64,000 nucleotides of DNA from Oikopleura dioica (lineage: Eukaryota > Animalia > Chordata), in assembly GCA_907165135.1 (NCBI GenBank), contig OU015566.1, positions 3,968,001 to 4,032,000 of the forward strand, written 5' to 3'. Below are positions 3,076-60,561 of this stretch, in pieces (position 1 is the stretch's first letter; each line of letters begins with the position of its first letter). The position numbers were made by a program, and so were the translations under genes. The notes under the pieces are model-generated. The model saw only the letters and a list, made by a program, of their open reading frames with translations. It had not been told where the DNA came from and searched no databases.

Positions 3076-4212
3076 TGTCGATCGTAAGAATTTTTATTTG
3101 AAGAAGAAAAAATTCATTTTCATTTTCATCTAAAAACTTTGAATAAAGAGCAGAAAACAATTTTTTTTTCATTCGAACTTGATAAAAAATTCAAGAGTCA
3201 AATTAAAAATTCGAGCTGGACAAGGCCAAGAGCGCAGATTCACTCTTGCCGCTTCCCATGCCGCTGACTCGATTTGAATAATTTAGAATAATGAAATCCA
3301 CCCGATCCCAAAAAAACGTTTTTCGCCTTGCTTCTTTTTTTATCAACCCCGCGTTTGACATTTTCAAAAGCGACATTTTCAATTTTCACACTTTGAAATA
3401 ATTTCAAAGAAATTTACAAGATTATCAAAATATTCGAAAAAATTAAAAAGGAAAATTCTAATTGCCAATTTCGTCAGCGACGTCCGGTCACTAGAAGTCC
3501 GGCTTAGAGGGTTGAATTATTTTCTGAAGATATAAGACGCGTTTTAATCCCCCGCCGAGCTCGAGTTCCACCAGACGCCCGCTTTTCTGATCTACCGATT
3601 TCGTCAGAATTTCTATTTTTCAAGCTAAATCGACCATTTTAGAATTCATCAACTTGGCAATTTTCTTGGGTTCATTTTTCTCGTCAAATAATAATTCATT
3701 TTTTTTATTTTTTTAAATAATTTTTCTTTTTTTAATTTTAAAAATTTTTTCTTGAAATAATTATTTTTTTTTTTAATTTTTCATTATTAGAAAAAAATAA
3801 TTGCTTTTGAGGAAAAAAAATAAAATTAGAAGTCAAGTCCTTTTTGACGAGTTCAGATTCCCTCGAAAAGAGTTGAAAAAAAGAGCCCGTGTCCCTCTAA
3901 ACAAGCTGTTTCCTCATGTTTGCTCGATCCAAACGTGAGACTGTCGGAATTCTGGATTTTCGTTTTTCAACTCGAAAAACAAGAGTCGGAAGAATGGTGT
4001 TTCCATTTGTTCCGGTCGCGTACCGAGCTGCTGGACAGGCGGCGATGAGATAAGACAAATTGGGCTGGAATTCGACGGCCAAATCGCGCGCCGAATGCCC
4101 AAGATGCGCAACTATGTCATATAATATGAGGTGGAGAGATGCGGCACATTTTCGAAGATAAGGAAGTAGTCATTTAAGAAATTATATTTTCTTAATATTG
4201 TTATTCTTTATC

Positions 4213-4256
4213 CGAGCTTGGCAGCCTTTGTAGAAAACCTGTGTCAAGGTCTCAAT
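4213..4256. mobile_element. Solo left end of the CTGGGC-family MITE
   Basis: GAGCTTGGCAGCCTTTGTAGAAAACCTGTGTCAAGG resembles the left TIR of the complete copies. Confidence 0.55.
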
Positions 4257-4562
4257 GAGGCAAAATGAATTCAAAGAACAATATTTTGAGAACAGCCACG
4301 CTGTTTTCATGCTGTTTTTTGCAAGAAATTGCATAAGAGGAAGTTCGACCGGAGTTCGATAAATTTACGACGTATGATTAATTAGAGGGAGATGAAATTA
4401 CGTGACGCTTTTTTTCCGAAAACTAAAAATATTTGCGTCAGAGTTATTTTCAATTAATTTGTCAATAATGCTTTGAAAACGAAAACGCAATTAGAATGCG
4501 TCTCAAAAGTGCTTGAAAAACAAGCTGACAAATGTAAAGCAAGCTGAAAAAGAAAAAAGTAA

Positions 4563-5393
4563 TTGCGTCAGCTTTTTCTCAAGGAAGAGCTCTTTTCATA
4601 CCGTTCTTTCGCTTCTTTTGAAAGTGCCATTCGGAAACGGATTAGAAACGACCGGGCAAGGGCAAAATACCACCTTGAAAAGGCAAATATTTACGACGAA
4701 TTAGAAATTTCCGCTTTGCAACAATTCCTCTCCCATGTGACCTCAGCGGTCAAACCGCGAAAATTTGTTTTGTCGTTTGTCTTAGCTTTCAGGGTTGGGG
4801 TTCAAGTAAGCCGCGGAGCGATTTCATGTTATACAGTATAAGTTATACTCTTAAGATTTTTTGAAAATTCTTCGTTAAAATGTAGCTCAGTAGAAAAAAA
4901 GCTCTAGTGAAAAAATTATTAATCCGTGATACCCTAAAGTTTTTATTCCTAAATTTGGACTTTGAAAATATCGACGGGAGACCCTTAAAAATCAGGTTCA
5001 AATGGAACTTTTTTCGTATCAGACATTGTCATGATTGTATCAAGATCGTTTTCTCTTGTTCGGTAGAAAAGATACTCTTCTCCCAAAATACTAGTCCAAA
5101 CTCTTGTTGATTCCAATCGCCTCGACTCAGCCTTTTCCAAAACTGGACCACACGAAAAGAAAAACACCCAATATTTTCGCTCCTTCCTTTCTTATCTTCC
5201 TGAGAAAGTTATCTTCCTTCTCACAATTTCTTGCGTGTCGAGGGAGTATTATTTCTTCAAATAATATGTTTGTGCCCGGTTGCTTGCTGGGCAAGGCGTT
5301 TTTTCTTTATTTTGAGAAACAATATCGCGTACCTCACCATTTTTTACGACGGCTATCATATTAACGCACCTGCGCCTAACCCCGACGATCTGT
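4563..5393 (+). CDS. Possible small spliced gene, product unknown
   Basis: Protein-like open stretches (FLKEELFSYRSF... and ...LRNNIAYLTIFYDGYHINAPAPNPDDL*), but I could not build a coherent exon chain. Confidence 0.2.
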
Positions 5394-5522
5394 AACGGGT
5401 ACTCGCCACGTCCTTTTTCTTTTTCTTCTTACCTTTTCTTTTTTCCTTATTTTTGACAAATTTGGTTAATCGAAGATTAATTTATCTTGGGACAAGGGTA
5501 ATATCCGCGGAATTCTTTCCAA

Positions 5523-5886
5523 ATGGACTCGGCAACCTGTGTTTAAAAACCTGAGTCAGGATATGAAAGATTACAAATGAAAAGCCGCGCAGCGGCTTTT
5601 TTTCAAACGAAGCCGCGGAGCGGCTTAACCATAATCTTAATATTGACTCTCAAGGCAGATAAGCGAAGCCGCTTTGCGGCTTTGTTTAATTAATCTCTTA
5701 TGAAAAGCCGCAAAGCGGCTTTTAAAACGAAGCCGCCGAGCGGCTTCGCTCAATTTATTTACGTGTCGATATTTAAATTCTGGCAAAGCCGCTTCGCGGC
5801 TTCGTTTTTAAAAACCGCTACGCGGCTTTTCATCAGAGATTTTTCAGACCCTGAGTCAGGTTTTCAAGAGAGGTTTCTGAGCCCAG
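5523..5886. mobile_element. hAT-like MITE (CTGGGC TIR family) with internal AAGCCGC/GCGGCTT repeats
   Basis: Ends GGACTCGGCAACCTGTG...CTGAGCCCAG, subterminal CCTGAGTCAGG, many AAGCCGC repeats; flanks match 5/8 as a possible TSD. Confidence 0.8.
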
Positions 5887-6418
5887 GTATCTAAGGTTTT
5901 TTCAGAAAGATTTTCTGAGTAAGAAAAAAAGGGCGTCTTTGAATTGCTTATCTTTTTTTGAAATTTGCAAGTGAAAAAGGGAGGTCGATGATTTCGTAAC
6001 AAGCCGCGCGTACGAGACATTCTGAACAAAATACCGCTATCTTAGCATGTGGCTTAGCATCGCTGCTAATATCGCCATAATTCTGGTATGTCCACGTCTT
6101 TCTCCCAGCCTCGGCAAGAAATTTATCTCCGATCGAACATGCGAAAAAGTAGAGCAAAAAGAAAGCAATTTATTATTCCTGAAATCGCTTCTGTCGATAA
6201 AACAAAGGGGGTCAAAAATTGACCATTATTTAGACCCTTCAAGGTTTCAAAATTTGTCTTTTGGAGTATAAAATGGCAGGATCAGCGAAAGCCGACTAAA
6301 ATGATCATTTTTGGAGTCGAGCATGAAGTTGAGTGGGAATATGTTTTCATTTTTTCATGGGGCTTATTACGGTCATCTTTATTGATGTCCTCTACAGAGT
6401 CGTTACTGGCGTCAGTTT

Positions 6419-6523
6419 CTGGGCTCGGCAAGTTGTGTAGAGACCCTGAGTCAGGACCTGAAGACCTGAAATAACAGATTTCAGACCCTGACTCAGGTTT
6501 TCTACACAGGTTGCCGAGACCAG
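6419..6523. mobile_element. 105-bp hAT-like MITE with 8-bp TSD
   Basis: TIR CTGGGCTCGGCAA / TTGCCGAGACCAG; flanking direct repeat GTCAGTTT (6411-6418) / CTCAGTTT (6524-6531). Confidence 0.9.
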
Positions 6524-7739
6524 CTCAGTTTTATGCATCTCCCGTTTATTCTCGTGAAGTAGGAAATAAGCTTAATTTTTGATTCGAAGATCTGCGATTT
6601 TTAGATTTCTCGATGAAGAAGAGAGGATTCAAGAGACCTATGGAAGCTCGTCGAATTCGTCTCGAAAGAAGAGTAAGAAATCCTCCACAGAAACCTCCTC
6701 AGTTACTTCAACAAAACTGTAAATAAAAAAGAGAAAAATTGTCCAATCAAAATTCGATTTTTTCGAAATTTTTTTTCTTAAATCTGATTGGTCTACTGGC
6801 TGAATGGGAAGATTTGATGAGTCAATGATTGAATTTATTCGATTAAAATTGCGTGAAAATCGATTTTATCGCGAAATTGAAAAATTAAGACTGTTCGCGC
6901 TACAGTGACGTACAGCTCAGTACGCGCCGTGGCGGTGGTGGTGCCGGATTCGTCGCCATAATCCGATAGTTATGGTGGCTCATAGAATGTTCCTTCGTGA
7001 AATCGACTTCGCCCTTTTCGCGCCGCCGCTAATCCGCTTCACTCTTCCAAGTGCACAAAAATAACGTACAGATTTTAATCCAATAAGATTCAATTTATTG
7101 ATGAATCCAAAATTATACAGTCAAAATGTTCTATTTCACCATCCGCTCTGGTCTTTTCCGCCATGTTTGAGAAACGTCACTACCGCATAGTTCCTGGATC
7201 TGGCCTTTTGTTTTGGCCCATCCCAATTCGGCGGAAGAAACGACTATTTCCGACGAACATCCTATTTTCTCTCGCAACACGTGATCAGAGCGCTTACCAA
7301 GCGAAAATCCATGTTTTCGTTCCAAAAGAGAATGTCGATGAATCTTTTCGACGTTCTGTATTCAACAATCCTGTCTTGATTATTTTTCGTTGAAGTCCGT
7401 AGCAGCGCGAATTAATTTGCACTCAACGGCTTTTGTTTTAATTAAGAACAAATATTTCTGTCCGCAATTGAAACAGAGCAACGTGTTGATTTTCACAATG
7501 TATATTGAAAATTTATCTCAAAGATGGAAATGAGGCAATTTTTTCGAAAAGTTAATTTAGTGACACCCTTATTTAAAAAAATCATTTAAAAAAATATTTT
7601 CATAATTAATTAATTATTAATTAATTGTTAAAAAATTCAATTATTAAATAAGACTTTTAAATAAATCAAAAATAATTAATTGAAAAAAAATATTATCAGA
7701 TTTATGAAAAAAATTTAAATTTCAATTGTTTTTTATTAA

Positions 7740-53720: not shown

Positions 53721-54112
53721 GGTAATTTTTTATTAAATATGATTTTAGTCGTGATGATGCTATTCTTCACCGGTGCCCTTCTTTCCCGCCTTGGAATCGC
53801 CAAAAATCGCGATTACAACGAAGAAATCTCCATCGAAATTTAACCGTTTTCCTTCTTCGAAATCAAATTTGCCTTTTGAAATTAAAAATAAAATGAGTGA
53901 CATAACTGCTGATGTGTTAATCGACCGCGTTGTTGTTTACGCATTCCAGTGCTCATTTTCACGAAATCTTTCCATCTGCTGTTTTCATTGTTTTCAAACA
54001 AATTCCTCAAGCCAACCGCAAGCGAGCGCTGACAAAGACCATTTATATCTCGCCCAGTCGCTGATTTCTCCATCAAACTCAAACTCGAGAATAAAAAAAC
54101 ACACACAGCAAG

Positions 54113-54969
54113 ATGAAACTGACATCCGGACTTCTCTTCGCTTTCGCCGCCGCCCAAGGTGAAGAAGAGCGAAAGAAGAACAACGCCTACGGAGGAAACA
54201 ACAACTACAACAACAACAATTACAACAACAACTACAACAACAACAACAACTACGGATCCGCCTACGGCGATCCCCACTTCATGATCAGCTCCTCCACCCA
54301 GCCCAGCATCTGCTTCGACTACACCCCGGAAGCCGACGCTGAGTTCACCCTTCTCTCCGACGCCTCCTCTGGCCTCCTCATCGAAGCCCACTCCGCCCTC
54401 CGATTGAAGCACGAGACCCACCGACACATCATCATGGACGAGATCAAATTCACCTCCCCCGAAGGCCGAGTCATCTCCTTCGACATCGACGGTGTCCATC
54501 TCAGCGGCTCCGAAGAGAACGCCTCCGACCGACACCCATTCACCGGCGTCCAGACCTTCGGAGACATCTCTTTCGTCACTCACACCGACGCCCACGGTAA
54601 CCACCAGCGAACCCACGTCGAGGTCGGCGATGCCGTCTTCATGGTCCGAGGAAACGCCCGAAAGGTAATCAAAACAAAAATCTTCGATGATTTTTTGGAA
54701 AATCTAAAGAAAAAATCCTCAACCCCCTTTTTCAGGAATCCATGGCTGTCGCCGTTGTCGAGCCAACTGGCCTCTCCGCCGAATCCACCGGCATCATCGG
54801 TCAATTCCTCCGATCCGACGCCTACACCGTCGAAGAGACCTCCAACCTCCACGCCACCGTCACCGCCGGCGGCATGTCCGTCGAGGCCGAGAAGAAGCCC
54901 TTCCATCAGCAACTCGCCTGCTGGGTCGTTGAAGAGGATGCCATGCTCAACATGATCGCCAACATCTAA
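54113..54969 (+). CDS. 261-aa secreted protein: short Asn/Tyr-rich peptide fused to a stand-alone inter-alpha-trypsin-inhibitor heavy-chain C-terminal (ITI_HC_C-like) domain
   Basis: Exons 54113-54664 and 54736-54969; signal MKLTSGLLFAFAAA; GD|PHFMI...ICFDY, TGIIGQF and CWVV motifs; strongly C-ending codons. Confidence 0.85.
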
Positions 54970-55206
54970 ATTCGAAAACAAACAAATCGCGATTGTTCTT
55001 CTTCCCTGTTTCTTTTTCTCCTTTCGTGGTGCAATATATAACCTTGGGATTTCAAAAATAATAAATGTGTCACCCACAGGTCATCAAAATTGAAGTCTTC
55101 TATTCAAAAATCAAGGAAATCGCAGGAAAATTATGAAAATATAGACATTTTTTATTTACTTGAAAGAGTGATTGAGCTTTTGTCGGTTTTCAGAAGCAAG
55201 CAGAAT

Positions 55207-58200
55207 TTATGAACAATGAGGGTTGAGAGCGTTGATATCGCGATTTCGAATTTGCCACTGGCACTTTCCATTTTACAGGAGCAGCTTACGCCGCTCGTTA
55301 TTCTAGAAAAAGCGATTAATTATGGCTCTCCTTATTTACTCACAATTTCGGCCGAATTCGCTGATTGCTGGCCTTGCACTTCCATCTGCAAAAAGAGCCG
55401 TGTTCGTAATTTGGCCCCCTACTTCTCAGAAACGCTATTCTTCCTTGATAACTCTGATCAAAGTACGTACTCTCGCCCCACTTGACCTTTTCCTCTTCAT
55501 AAATGATCGGCCTGCCGTAACGATCAATGCACTCCATTTCGATATTTGACGCGTTGTAAGTGTAGAAGAAATCGCCTGGATTTGGGCAAGCGCCCTCGTC
55601 GGCGCAATACGCACCTGTCAGGGGTTTATTTCGAAGTGGCTCCTTCCAGCGGCATTGTTGACGGGTGCAGTAACACTTTCAAGTGGCTCAACCAGCGAAC
55701 AAGAGTTCAAATAGTATGACTCAGTTAGATAAGACTGACTAGGATTAGGGGACTTGGGATACTCATAAGGGGATCCCTAGGGGATCCTAGAGGATTAGCC
55801 GTAAGGGGGTCCCGGGGGTCGGAGCCCCCTTTGCTTTGGGGGTGGGGGTTCGTAGATGGGCCCTTCTTTTCAGCCTTTGAAAGAAAATGGCATATTGTTG
55901 AGCCAATCCTTTAATTTGATTGAATAGCTTAGTGTTCCATAATTCGAGGTATGAATCACATGACCAGGTTGAGAGCACTGTAAGTTGCAGGAATTGTCAT
56001 TACTGATGTCATCACAATTCTACAATGCAAAAATTAACGGATTTCTATTTGAAAAAAGCTCACAATTGGAATGATGTCTTTTGCCAGTCGGATGGATTCA
56101 CGTGGGTTGGGGCAGTATTTGATGCACTCGCATTCGGAGTCGGTGTCCCAGTCCATCGTTCCGAATTTATTCAAAGTGCATTTTGCTGAATTTCCTTTCG
56201 TGCACTGGAGAATCGCATCATCAGGGCACGAAGCGGTTACTATCGAATTCAAGCCGAATCGGGTCGTTTCCTCAAAAATCGATTCTAGAGAAGATGACGA
56301 TAAAAAGCTACCTGGGAGTAGATTAATTCGCCTCCAAGTCGTCTTTCCTTCAAGCTGAAGAGTTTTGGTTCCCCACATGTATTTTTTGAGCAGTGGCAGT
56401 TGGGACGATTCGACCAGCTCCCGTCTGCCAGACAAGTGCTCGAAGAAATTTGACCAATACAAATTGCGATGAGTTCTGTATCTTCTCGATTTTCGCAGAC
56501 TGCTCGGCAGGTCGCTCCCGTTGGAACTTGATAAGCACTAGAAAGAGTCATGTTTTGTTTTTGTTTTTTCTATAATACCTAGCCATTTCATCGCAGTGCC
56601 AATGGTAAGCAGGCTTCTGGGCTTTCTGAGGTAGCTGATTTACATTGCACAACTCAGGTAGACATTTGCATCCTGCGTCGTAGCCAACTTGATCCCAACT
56701 TGAGCCGGCTTGATCCAAAGCGCATTTTAGCGAAAGCTCGTCGCAGCTCAATGCGTAGCCAGGATTACATTTTCCACTGCATCTTTGGCCTTTTTGAGGG
56801 TACTTTTTCGAAAACGCTACTTTTCAATGACGCAGCCTGGCCAAAACTGTCTGCTAGACATTGCCGTTCGTGGCGAAATAAACGGGGCTCCCTGGGAAAG
56901 TCGTCAAATGTCGCCGAATGTCGCCGAACGTCGCCAAATGTCGCTGAATGTTGCCGAATGTCGCCGAATGTCGCTGAATGTCGTCGAATGTCGCCACTTA
57001 TTCTTGAAAAGATGTCGACATTTGGCGACATTCGACGACATTTGGCGACATTTGGCGACTTTCCCAGCGTCGCCAAAATATACAAAAATCATGTTTACCC
57101 TAAACCTTGATCATCACACTCCCAAAAGCCATTGTTTATCTTCGGCTTCTTCGAGCAATCGCCATTATTCCCCTCAATTGGGAACAAAGGAGTTTCTGTC
57201 GATAACGATGTCAAAGACACGGTTGTTGTCTCAGGCGTTGATGAAGTTTGAATCGACGTGGTGACCTCTTCTTCCACGCAAATCGGACTTTTGTCGCCTT
57301 TTGAGAGTAACGATGAATTATTCCGATTTCTCTGTTGAGGAGCTTACGTCTCTTGTTCTTCAAGTTCAAGAAAAGAGGGAAAGAGATGAGCAATTTTTAT
57401 GCATTTTCTTTATTTTAATTGGAGCTTTCTGTAAGTATTTTTTTCTGTCAAAATTCTTTGGAAACCAAAATTCTCGAAATTTCATGGATTTGAAGAAAAG
57501 GGCTCTTTTAGCCAATCAGAAGCAAGTATGGCTCGCTTCAGCCAATTAAAAACGAGAACGACCCCCATCAGATACCCTCTATTCTTCCATTTTTGCTTAT
57601 TATTCATGTGACATTCTATTTATTCAGTCTTCCTGGCGATCTGGATTTTCATCCTCCGAGTCGTTTTCTTCAACCCAAAAAGCGACAAAACAGCAGAATT
57701 CGAAGCAAAAAAGCGATCAACCCTAAAAGGCAGAAGTCGCCAAAATACGATCTGTGTCCAACTTGAAAGCTCAACCAACCCTGAAAAATGAAAAGAATGT
57801 TTCATCCTTAAATGTTACTTTTCCTGAAATATAAATTTCCAAGTCGTAGTCGTACTCCATGAATCCAGGAATGTTCTCAGGGCAGATTTCGCTCGAAATC
57901 GCGTAAGAAATCAGCTGATGAGAGCCGAGAATTCGCGAAATATACCAATGATTCGTCATGTAGTAGAGGTACAGTCCGGAGTTCGACTTGTAAGCGTCTT
58001 TTCCATTGAATTTCGAGTGGAAGGAGTAAAAATCGTTTTCGAGAAAACGACTTGCAGCAACTAAAATCGCAGTCTTCCTCGTCGGATTTATCGGAGCAAT
58101 CAAATTCGCCGTCGCAAATCCGATGTTTGAAAATTCTCTCGCGAGAAATTGGACACGTGACCAACTCGTGGCCGCAGTTTTCTTCGCAGTGGTATTGTTT

Positions 58201-60561
58201 GCAGGTTTGAATGATGTCGAGCGTTGTTGGTCGGAGCCGCTGGGTTTGGATCGGCAGATCGGTTTTGCGATCGGTGATTGTTGGGTAGTTGTAGTTTTTC
58301 GGGTCGCGGGAGAAGTCCCACGAACCGTAGTGCATCACGGAATTGAGTTCGTATTGATCGTTCGTGTCTAGCCAGGCTTCTTCGACAAGAAGCTAGGGAA
58401 AATGAAATGAAAATAAAGAAGCGAAAAAGGACGAATTTTGGGTCGAAAAATGGATACAGCGGCTCGAAGCGACAAATAATCGCGACAAAATTTTGCGTGG
58501 GCGGAAAAACGGCTTCTGATTGGCCGTTAAACGGAATCCAGGCTGCTGATTGGCTGAAAATTCCCAAAATTTTGTCGCGAATTTTTGTCGCTTCGAGCGG
58601 TTATATCCATTTTTCGACCCAAAATTCGTCCTTTTTTCGCTTCTTATTTCTTGTCGAAGATACCTTGAAATTTTTGGCCTTTCCATCAGTAATCCTGTCC
58701 CAATGAATCTTTACATATTCATTCCGATCTGGTCGATTTTGTTCATGATCTCTCCCGAGCGCATGAAATATCTCGTGCAGCGTCACTCCCCTCGTGTAGC
58801 AAGTATCATCGAGCGAAAGCCGCTGGCCAGTTGCTTCGGCTTGTTGAGCGCCGAGAAAGCTCCAACAGCCGCCGCCGTCGACGATGTGGATCTTGTGCTC
58901 GAGTCGCTGCGCTGCGAGACGAGAAATCGGGTCGATTTGAATGCAATTGTTGAATTCCTTATTTATCCAAGCAAAATGCCCGATCACAGTATTTCGATTC
59001 GCGCGAGAAATCGAATGCCGATTGTCGAAATAAACCGGAACCACGTATTTGGAAGTGCTGTGTTTGTAGCCATTTTTATCACTCGTCCCGTTTTTTCCAT
59101 AAAAATCCATCGCTGGCCCATTGGAAATTTATTTTCAACAAGAAGAGCTCGAGAATTTTCGATCGGCTTTCGTCTACTTGATTGTGAGTTTTCTTCGAAT
59201 TTGATGATGTTTTTCGAAGGGAGGAGGATTCCGCGGGAAGCGAATTCGCGATATGTTGCCTTTTTCAAGGCTTTTTGAATGACACAAAAATTATTGAATT
59301 TTTTTTTTTTGTAATTTTTTAAGTAATTTTTGGATAATTTAGTTGATCTGAAAATTTTTTTAATAATTTTTAAATAATTTTTTTAATAATTTTTCTTTCA
59401 ATTAATTTTTTCATTTTTTTAATTTTTAAAAATTATTTATTTATATTTTTTTCCTTGAAAAGAAATTTGAATGAAGCCATTCCTTCGTATAAACAATATC
59501 ATCACTCGTCATCCTAAACTTCGCCAAATATGAAATTCCTCTCGGCCTCGGTCGAAAATACTCCAACCCCTCCACTTGTCGCCCTTTGTAAGATGAAGAA
59601 GAACTCGTCAATCGTTTCTTCGGTTTGCCGTAGCATTTGACTGTCTGTATCTTTTTATTCGGCGACCATTTGCAGGAAACATAGTGGTTGTTGATTTCTG
59701 TACATTCGCAAATGACCTGATCGACGGTGGACTTCATCCCAGGGGGCAACGGACCTGGCATTTTGAATGATTGTCGTATTTTTTGAAACTTTGTTTTCTT
59801 CAAAAGGTTCTTTTTGAGAAAAAAGGGGTCGCGAAAAACGTGAAATTCAGAGAATCTACTAGACATTAAAAACTTTCTAAGGCGTTTAAGAAATTCGAGC
59901 CGGCCAGGAAATCCTTCTCAAGCTAAAAGTATTAAGCATTTGAGAAAATTGATCACTGCCCGAGCAAGGCCTTTTGCTGCATTAAATTAAGGGAGGGGTC
60001 TTTCAAAGGGCTTTGGATTATTTTTAAAGTGAACCTTGATCCTGAGCAGCTGACGAAATTTACAGCGCTTTCGAAGCGGAGACGGTACCAGATTATTGGG
60101 TCAGGGCAGCCAGAACTGAAAAATCAGCCTTTTAGGCAGAAGAAGAAGAAAAATGAAAAAGGCGAAAGTTTGAAAGATTTCCGGGCAGAACCAAAAATTG
60201 AAGCGATTTTCTGAATCTGGATTTTCATTGGCCGGTGAGCAAATACAGCAATCTTATTGGTTATCCGAAAATTCACTTCAAATTGTTGGTTAAGCTCAGG
60301 TTTACGGGACTAAACCAATTGGAAGTGTATTTTTAGATAACCAATAAGATTGCTGTATTTGGCCTATCGGCCAATCAAAACCCTAATCCATTAAATCAAT
60401 TTCATTAATTGGTTTAATCCGATTTCAAGCGAAATCGTATTTCAAAGAACACCAAAATTAAATTAAATAAAGATGGTTCATCAAAATCAAGTTTTCTCCA
60501 AAAATTACCTTGATGCTTCCACACCAAGAAAAGCGCCGAGCAGAATTTTTCTTAGTCTCAT
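55207..60561 (-). CDS. Astacin (M12A) metalloprotease mosaic: signal, sushi-like, pro-region, astacin, LDLa, Ser/Thr linker, several sushi-like domains
   Basis: Signal MRLRKILLGAFLGVEAS; HEIFHALGRDHEQNRPDR zinc motif; SVMHYG Met-turn; CDGEFDCSDKSDEEDC LDLa; Cys/Trp-patterned C-terminal modules; frameshifts near 59744, 58045 and 55272. Confidence 0.85.
56892..57067. repeat. Fold-back element of inverted ATGTCGCCGA 10-bp arrays with CTGGGAAAGTCG TIRs (intronic)
   Basis: About 9 forward and about 4 reverse units; ends CTGGGAAAGTCG / CGACTTTCCCAG. Confidence 0.85.
58379..58660. mobile_element. Long-armed CCAAT/GC-box palindrome filling an astacin intron (58393-58663)
   Basis: About 90-bp near-perfect inverted arms; the outermost 13-mer TCTTCGACAAGAA pairs intron sequence with exon sequence. 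Confidence 0.85.
60205..60395. mobile_element. Two inverted copies of the CAAATACAGCAATCTTATTGGTTAT repeat family (intronic)
   Basis: Same ~80-bp unit as at 27485-27570. Confidence 0.75.

Follow-up and report, generated by a model that had tools for sequence, protein, structure and literature searches.

The window, a 64,000-nt stretch of the Oikopleura dioica genome, carries on its forward strand a gene of two exons (positions 54113–54969) whose product is 261 aa long (Table 1). The splice junction NARK/ESMAV (RK/ES) was supported by intron-less contigs of an orthologue (L046–L048, from two JGI samples and one SRA run) and by a public protein, CAG5104040.1 (P0158; OKI2018_I69 chr1.g1063, 261 aa), which was 100% identical to exon 1 and exon 2. 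The three orthologous contigs showed 84–85% DNA identity to the window, were polyadenylated and skipped exactly the intron at 54665–54735; being short and ending in poly(A), they look like transcripts. They align from window position 54096 at their own base 10, which places their 5' end near 54087, 26 nt before the ATG, and poly(A) follows a 3' UTR of ~130 nt. The gene model is already publicly annotated under CAG5104040.1, unnamed and uncharacterised.

A preliminary description of the locus had seen neither a VIT nor a VWA domain and had named additional upstream exons for these domains as a point to be checked in cDNA. The exons were searched separately, and P0158 or the orthologue P0001 served as full-length queries. 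Pfam returned no match to VIT or VWA for either exon, P0158 or the orthologues, and since the orthologous transcripts start so shortly before the ATG, upstream exons for VIT or VWA are excluded; the orthologue's polyadenylated contigs contained none. [quoted passage not shown] No other gene overlaps the locus. A 244-aa antisense ORF (53882–54616, minus strand), with poly-Val opposite the AAC (Asn) runs, was dismissed as a by-product of the extreme C-ending bias of the sense codons, and the remaining ORFs overlapping 54113–54969 were rejected as genes on the same grounds.

The protein starts with residues that are signal-peptide-like by direct reading (residues 1–14/15), as described before, and the pattern, ending in A-x-A-Q, recurs in paralogues and orthologues. 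It is followed by a cargo that has no Cys and consists of 45% Asn and 16% Tyr. The preliminary description had given this peptide 39 aa; its Asn/Tyr-rich nature stands, and its length is 38 aa (residues 16–53), or 39 aa with signal-peptide cleavage behind A14. The PHFMI noted behind the cargo belongs to a GDPHFMI at residues 52–58, in which D53 precedes P54. The remaining 208 aa form a domain that holds the only two Cys of the protein (C67 and C246), one N-glycosylation sequon (N136) and 13 His. Both Cys are located downstream of D53 and none upstream, so that no disulfide is possible across a cut at this position.

With 6.3% of its residues being His, the domain (54272–54966) is His-rich, and its clusters include H-E-T-H-R-H and H-T-D-A-H-G-N-H-Q-R-T-H. 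The N-H-[QE]-x-[TV] part of these clusters is common to the paralogues and does not occur in the aligned ITIH tails. The His clusters may act as a pH sensor or a metal site.

In the window gene, 66.7% of third codon positions were C, while the window's other long ORFs had 33–37% and the genome's actin and EF1A-like genes 40–52%; these values bear out the strong preference for C-ending codons noticed earlier. Among the paralogues, this value ranged from 25% to 66%. The bias is compatible with very high expression and is not proof of it. Comparison of the window gene with the orthologous transcripts gave dN/dS values of 0.16–0.23 for the domain, which is therefore under purifying selection.

Table 1 Features of the window gene, and related loci grouped by cargo type (loci given as contig and position)
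Feature	Position	Strand	Remarks
TATA-like element (putative)	54044–54048	+	~40 nt 5' of the inferred transcript start; read in sequence
ATG	54113	+	start of 184-codon frame to 54664
Signal-peptide-like N-terminus, codons 1–15	54113–54157	+	Met-Lys, hydrophobic core, Ala-Ala-Ala-Gln; read directly
Asn/Tyr-rich cargo, codons 16–53	54158–54271	+	38 aa, ending in ...YGSAYGD; 17 N, 6 Y, 5 G
Gly52-Asp53-Pro54-His55, predicted autocleavage site D53/P54	54266–54277	+	D, P and H invariant in 55 aligned members
Exon 1 portion of ITIH-type C-terminal domain, P54–K184	54272–54664	+	Cys67; N-A-S sequon N136
Intron, 71 nt, GT..AG, phase 0, K184/E185	54665–54735	+	missing from transcript contigs L046–L048 and from P0158
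Exon 2, remainder of domain, E185–I261	54736–54969	+	77 codons + stop; G..GQF motif, Cys246-Trp247
Stop codon	54967–54969	+	end of exon 2
AATAAA polyadenylation signal (putative)	55060–55065	+	read in sequence
Loci with Asn/Tyr-rich cargo	window gene; C1:2.87 Mb; C2:11.25 Mb		
Loci with Lys/Asn-rich start, then Thr/Pro-rich stretches	C1:6.92 Mb; C5:3.75 Mb (tandem pair); C1:14.96 Mb		
Loci with long Thr-rich or Gly/Ser/Thr/Tyr-rich mucin-like cargo	C4:10.54 Mb; C5:10.09 Mb		
Loci with EGF-module cargo	C5:9.41 Mb; C1:13.48 Mb		

Identity of the C-terminal domain

The preliminary description had called the domain complete and ITI_HC_C-like and had proposed a HMMER search as a check. The outcome of this search depended on the model. 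The gathering cut-off of the Pfam model PF06668 (ITI_HC_C), an operational threshold, is 27 bits; both P0158 (15.4 bits) and exon 2 by itself (19.1 bits) fell below it. PF06668 was nevertheless the top or sole real match for exon 2, P0158, the orthologues and four of the five paralogues scanned. Its matches covered the G..GQF region only, with 14–23 bits in the paralogues, and one family member (P0024) passed the cut-off at 30.7 bits. A Pfam match to Apis_Csd on the Asn/Tyr run (16–17 bits) was taken as a low-complexity artefact.

A profile of the family itself recovered the relationship. Built from an alignment of eight family members (A1) and searched against 1.84 billion representative proteins, it yielded 295 matches at E ≤ 1e-3, including six proteins that are complete for VIT, VWA and ITI_HC_C in Pfam (E 4e-9 to 5e-7). 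Two of these were ITIH3-like proteins of Styela (P0110, 4e-9) and Ptychodera (P0115, E 1e-8), and the others were P0122, P0141, P0148 and P0155. In each heavy-chain match, the alignment already starts at the cleavage-site segment, ~35 residues upstream of the Pfam model. Alignment of A1 with 12 ITIH tails by hhalign gave a probability of 99.7% and an E value of 5.4e-26 over 200 of 210 columns, that is, homology over the whole domain, with GDPHF in register. In the sequence alignments described next, the GDPHF, the cysteine of xCF[DN] (C67), L..D, G..GQF and C246-W matched the ITIH proteins column for column.

Two larger alignments were made, one of 13 sequences (A2) and one of 55 (A3), the latter including true ITIH proteins. 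Besides the D, P and H of the motif, one Cys and two Gly were invariant across the 55 sequences, and the F of D-P-H-F was nearly invariant in both A2 and A3; the motif is in register with the ITIH cleavage site. C67 and C246 each fall in conserved columns, and the G..GQF motif is present. The profile results override the single-sequence miss in Pfam: the domain is a genuine and complete, but divergent, ITIH-type C-terminal domain. Compared to ITIH, the only missing part is ~20–35 residues after the Cys-Trp. The earlier claim of completeness, sub-threshold in Pfam, is made firm by the profile search, the alignments, hhalign and the predicted fold, and the reading as a minimal ITIH-type protein agrees with the signal-peptide-like start, the short low-complexity cargo, the complete C-terminal domain and the D-P-H in register.

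For the fold, residues 16–258 of the orthologue P0001 were modelled with AlphaFold2 on the 55-row alignment; over residues 50–184, this orthologue and the window protein share 92% identity. The model was a beta-sandwich with a mean pLDDT of 88.7 and a pTM of 0.84. The first ~22 residues of the cargo had pLDDT values below 50 and are predicted to be disordered, while the last five cargo residues before the GD (YGSAY; strand E29–33 of the P0001 model) form strand 1 of the predicted sandwich. GD/PH is modelled as the turn between strands 1 and 2, and HFMIS as strand 2. The same arrangement has been described for GDPH-cleaving VWD domains and noted for ITIH3/5/6, whose GDPH is placed between strands 1 and 2 of a VWD-like sandwich (PMC10880436). 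The structure prediction suggested in the preliminary description thus returned an ITIH-tail-like beta-sandwich with the motif in the strand 1–2 turn.

In the ESM-Atlas shape search, with predicted models on both sides, an ITIH1-like cluster ranked first (TM 0.77 over 220 residues), followed by ITI_HC_C clusters (0.62–0.63) and by the VWD proteins SUSD2, mesh and BMPER (0.55–0.61). Foldseek against the PDB matched the VWD assemblies of MUC2, MUC5AC, VWF, MUC5B and FCGBP with a probability of 1.0 and a best E of 1.6e-5, at 11–17% identity over ~172 aligned columns. The predicted fold is therefore closest to ITIH tails, with VWD domains next. A sequence search of the PDB with the family profile gave nothing credible, and we know of no solved structure that contains an ITIH propeptide. 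Neither the exons, P0158, the orthologues nor the paralogues had a Pfam match to VWD (PF00094) at E values up to 1–10. The GDPH-cleaving VWD proteins (MUC2, MUC5AC, FCGBP, SUSD2, RGM, BMPER) share with the window protein the predicted sandwich topology, the GD/PH in the strand 1–2 turn and, by analogy, the proposed Asp-anhydride chemistry. Unlike them, the window protein has no C8 or TIL modules and no fragment-holding disulfide.

The window protein resembles ITIH also in that the part upstream of the domain has no Cys bridge to it. It differs from ITIH in the size and nature of this part, which is a low-complexity peptide of 38 aa compared to a VIT-VWA heavy chain of ~650 aa, in the absence of the tail after Cys-Trp and in its His-rich loops, which are missing from ITIH. 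We know of no bikunin-type acceptor in larvaceans.

The domain with different cargoes

A search of the genome (64.3 Mb, 19 contigs) gave 35 matching segments, which were grouped into ~20–23 loci. All loci with a visible junction read (A/G)(Y)GD/PHF[MH][VI], and the sequence upstream of the junction differs among them. The count of paralogues with different cargoes that had been proposed therefore found several cargo types: Asn/Tyr-rich, Lys/Asn-rich with Thr/Pro-rich, mucin-like and EGF (Table 1). Members compared with the window protein (e.g., CBY37716.1, CAG5083252.1, L003, L004 and L006) have the same tail and the (A/G)YGD/PHF[MH][VI] junction, and they are secreted proteins wherever the N-terminus is visible. 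They differ from it in their cargoes, which are Lys/Asn-rich and Thr/Pro-rich peptides, EGF arrays or Thr-rich mucin-like repeats of ~330 aa, and their domains are 25–46% identical to that of the window protein.

Two family members with unlike cargoes lie in tandem on the minus strand at G000:C5:3749500-3751750. One has a cargo that is Lys/Asn-rich and Thr/Asp/Ala/Pro-rich, and that of the other is Gly/Asn/Tyr-rich. In the latter, the first exon meets a stop soon after PHFMV, and this member may have an intron here or may be a pseudogene.

In the wider protein search, D-P-H was present at the start of the domain in 51 of the 54 matches inspected, and the other three were N-terminally truncated fragments or had no such motif. 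The cargoes across the matches were VIT-VWA, EGF arrays, mucin-like regions and short low-complexity peptides, all of them of matrix type. Their sizes ranged from peptides of 25–60 aa that follow a signal peptide up to EGF arrays of 943 aa and, in the O. dioica protein CBY37716.1, 1784 aa.

The cargo is poorly conserved between lineages, and the domain is the better-conserved part. The orthologues of the Bergen type (North-Atlantic type), CBY24947.1 and CBY06787.1 (P0002/P0003), have domains 84–86% identical to that of the window protein, and in place of the Asn/Tyr run they have a Lys/Pro/Ser/Tyr-rich cargo (residues ~20–60) with repeats of the type K-P-[PS]-[SG]-Y, which we take to be reminiscent of mussel-foot adhesive repeats. 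Kept across lineages were only Tyr and the last ~7 residues of the cargo (...YGSAYGD or ...YASGYDD). The preliminary description had imagined the peptide as a prion-like or di-tyrosine-linkable tag, and the persistence of Tyr despite the change of cargo can be read, speculatively, as a supporting detail for these ideas.

A protein of the sponge Dysidea avara (XP_065899976.1, P0145, 344 aa), automatically named ITIH5-like, has an ITIH-type tail with Q-D-P-H-F. It resembles the window protein in its tail and its D-P-H-F motif, and no VIT or VWA match was found in the part inspected; it differs in that its N-terminal part is Cys-rich and contains no low-complexity peptide, and its name is automatic only. 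Judged from its sequence, this protein suggests that the stand-alone ITIH-type tail occurs outside chordates and is old in animals.

An outright loss of canonical ITIH in Oikopleura was considered and rejected, since at C1:3.118 Mb there is a gene with hemicentin-GBD, VIT and VWA that still has an ITIH-type tail, though a weak one. This gene consists of the ORF 4077–7085 of segment L049 (G000:C1:3113000-3122999, minus strand) and downstream exons. Against the family profile, its tail scored 27.8 and 16 bits. Because G-L-P-A-L-F replaces G-D-P-H-F there, this heavy-chain-like protein has probably lost self-cleavage, while the small family members keep the motif.

Possible fates of the Asn/Tyr-rich peptide

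Motifs of the GDPH type undergo autocatalytic cleavage between Asp and Pro, which leaves a reactive C-terminal Asp anhydride (PMC8267560). In ITIH, low pH triggers cleavage, the propeptide is needed for coupling and not just for cleavage, and the Asp of ITIH3 is ester-linked to C6 of GalNAc in the chondroitin sulfate of bikunin (PMC8267560 and references therein). Ester bonds of this type are cut by 50 mM NaOH (PMC3320993).

By analogy with ITIH1–3, the product of the window gene would be a secreted two-part precursor of cargo and ITIH-type domain, in which the side chain of Asp53 would attack the peptide bond of this same residue late in the secretory pathway, where conditions are acidic. The cut at D53/P54 would leave the 38-aa peptide with an activated (anhydride) C-terminal Asp, and as no Cys ties it to the domain, the peptide would be free to leave. 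Its most likely fate would be the transfer of Asp53 to a hydroxyl of a matrix polysaccharide, with an ester as in the linkage of ITIH to chondroitin sulfate. The matrix, plausibly that of the house, would thereby be decorated with Tyr-rich tags, and the same module would serve ~20 paralogous genes with other cargoes. We infer the acceptor, the tissue and the house location, like the chemistry itself, from this analogy.

We tentatively rank self-cleavage followed by ester transfer first, at somewhat less than an even chance, because the nearest homologues do so and a "cut-off" tail would be odd on matrix-type cargoes. The location of both Cys downstream of the cut is what would be expected for release and not for a disulfide-held nick. 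The house contains cellulose, and sulfated proteoglycans are needed for its inflation (PMC3390340). Speaking against ester transfer, the functional product could be the better-conserved domain and not the cargo. The sub-threshold Pfam scores, the restriction of known ester coupling to vertebrate ITIH, the hydrolysis seen in FCGBP and the lack of an oikosin name in the clusters examined also count against it. A broader claim, in which the ITIH-type tail serves larvaceans as a portable, self-contained protein-to-polysaccharide ligation tag, with the cargoes of ~20 genes, from the 38-aa Asn/Tyr peptide to EGF arrays and mucins, esterified through their new C-terminal Asp to glycosaminoglycan or cellulose of the house, is conceivable, though we would sooner doubt than assert it.

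The motif, the fold and the missing tethering Cys fit equally well with release of the peptide alone, where the domain would be a self-removing pro-domain or solubility chaperone, the anhydride would be hydrolysed, and the free peptide would self-assemble as an amyloid-like Asn/Tyr zipper, or else matrix peroxidases would cross-link it at its Tyr residues, and no glycan ester would form. Plain hydrolysis of the anhydride after cleavage is the observed fate in the VWD domain of FCGBP, the sole case examined (PMC8267560), and oikosins with peroxidase domains exist (PMC3390340). The composition of the cargo and its predicted disorder are consistent with this reading, as is the retention of Tyr when the composition shifts between lineages. 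However, a conserved throwaway domain of 208 aa is hard to square with EGF arrays and mucin-like regions that need no solubilising, and the requirement of the homologous ITIH domain for coupling also argues against it, so that release alone appears rather unlikely. The better conservation of the domain would be more at home if the cut left a nick without separation. The cut would then stabilise the sandwich, with strand 1 (YGSAY) held non-covalently, the domain would be a functional matrix component, e.g., a binding module, and the Asn/Tyr stretch would be its flexible N-terminal tail. Strand 1 does belong to the predicted sandwich, the unusual His content may hint at a function of the domain's own, and cleavage raises the stability and protease resistance of the FCGBP VWD domain (PMC10880436). 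We consider such a nick unlikely: the cleaved VWD proteins all retain an interfragment disulfide (PMC8267560), which the window protein does not have, and the closest homologues, the ITIH tails, do part from the heavy chain.

GDPH could also be no more than a structural turn; the secreted 25-kDa protein would then stay intact and have no connection with the house, acting e.g. in gut or gonad. The VIT-VWA protein of the same genome, which lost the motif in its tail, indicates that the fold does not need it. Yet D, P and H are invariant in 55 diverse members even though the fold tolerates their loss elsewhere, which argues that the motif is kept for its chemistry, and cleavage of a VWD domain depends on the Asp and His (PMC10880436). 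An uncleaved protein is accordingly the least credible reading and highly improbable.

At this locus, a known autoprocessing module is cut down to its smallest natural context, and it is expanded into a larvacean cargo-swapping family; no paper describing this family was found in the literature searched. Few covalent cross-links between protein and glycosaminoglycan are known, and the ester that joins ITIH heavy chains to chondroitin sulfate or hyaluronan is one of them. To our knowledge, the reaction has been studied only in the large vertebrate heavy chains, and ester coupling has been demonstrated only for vertebrate ITIH with bikunin. With a natural protein of one peptide and one domain, the reaction could be dissected in its simplest form, from the cleavage and its dependence on pH to the specificity for an acceptor, and such a protein could become a compact tag for attaching peptides to polysaccharides. 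If the ligation-tag reading were true, the window gene would encode the minimal natural substrate, the ~210-aa domain alone would suffice for the reaction, and the chemistry would predate the vertebrate bikunin/TSG-6 system and be independent of it. The family may explain part of the stitching of the rapidly rebuilt cellulose/proteoglycan house. If only cleavage and hydrolysis occur, the family would still be a clear case of the modular reuse of an autoprocessing domain.

None of the members of the protein clusters examined carried an oikosin name, and the text and 11 supplements of Hosp et al. 2012 (PMC3390340), where oikosins are listed by nucleotide accessions only, contained no peptides or accessions of the family. 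A 2026 single-cell preprint made no relevant mention of the ITIH-type family. Roughly one in two proteins of the house proteome lacks any recognised domain (PMC3390340). A neighbour gene downstream of the window gene (57877–59110, minus strand) has an exon of an astacin-type metalloprotease at a distance of ~3.6 kb (58601–59110, Pfam E 6.5e-25), and its next ORF contains an LDLa-like Cys/Asp-rich stretch (C-D-G-E-F-D-C-S-D-K-S-D-E); a mix of astacin and LDLa domains has been reported for the oikosin-24 family of house proteins (PMC3390340).
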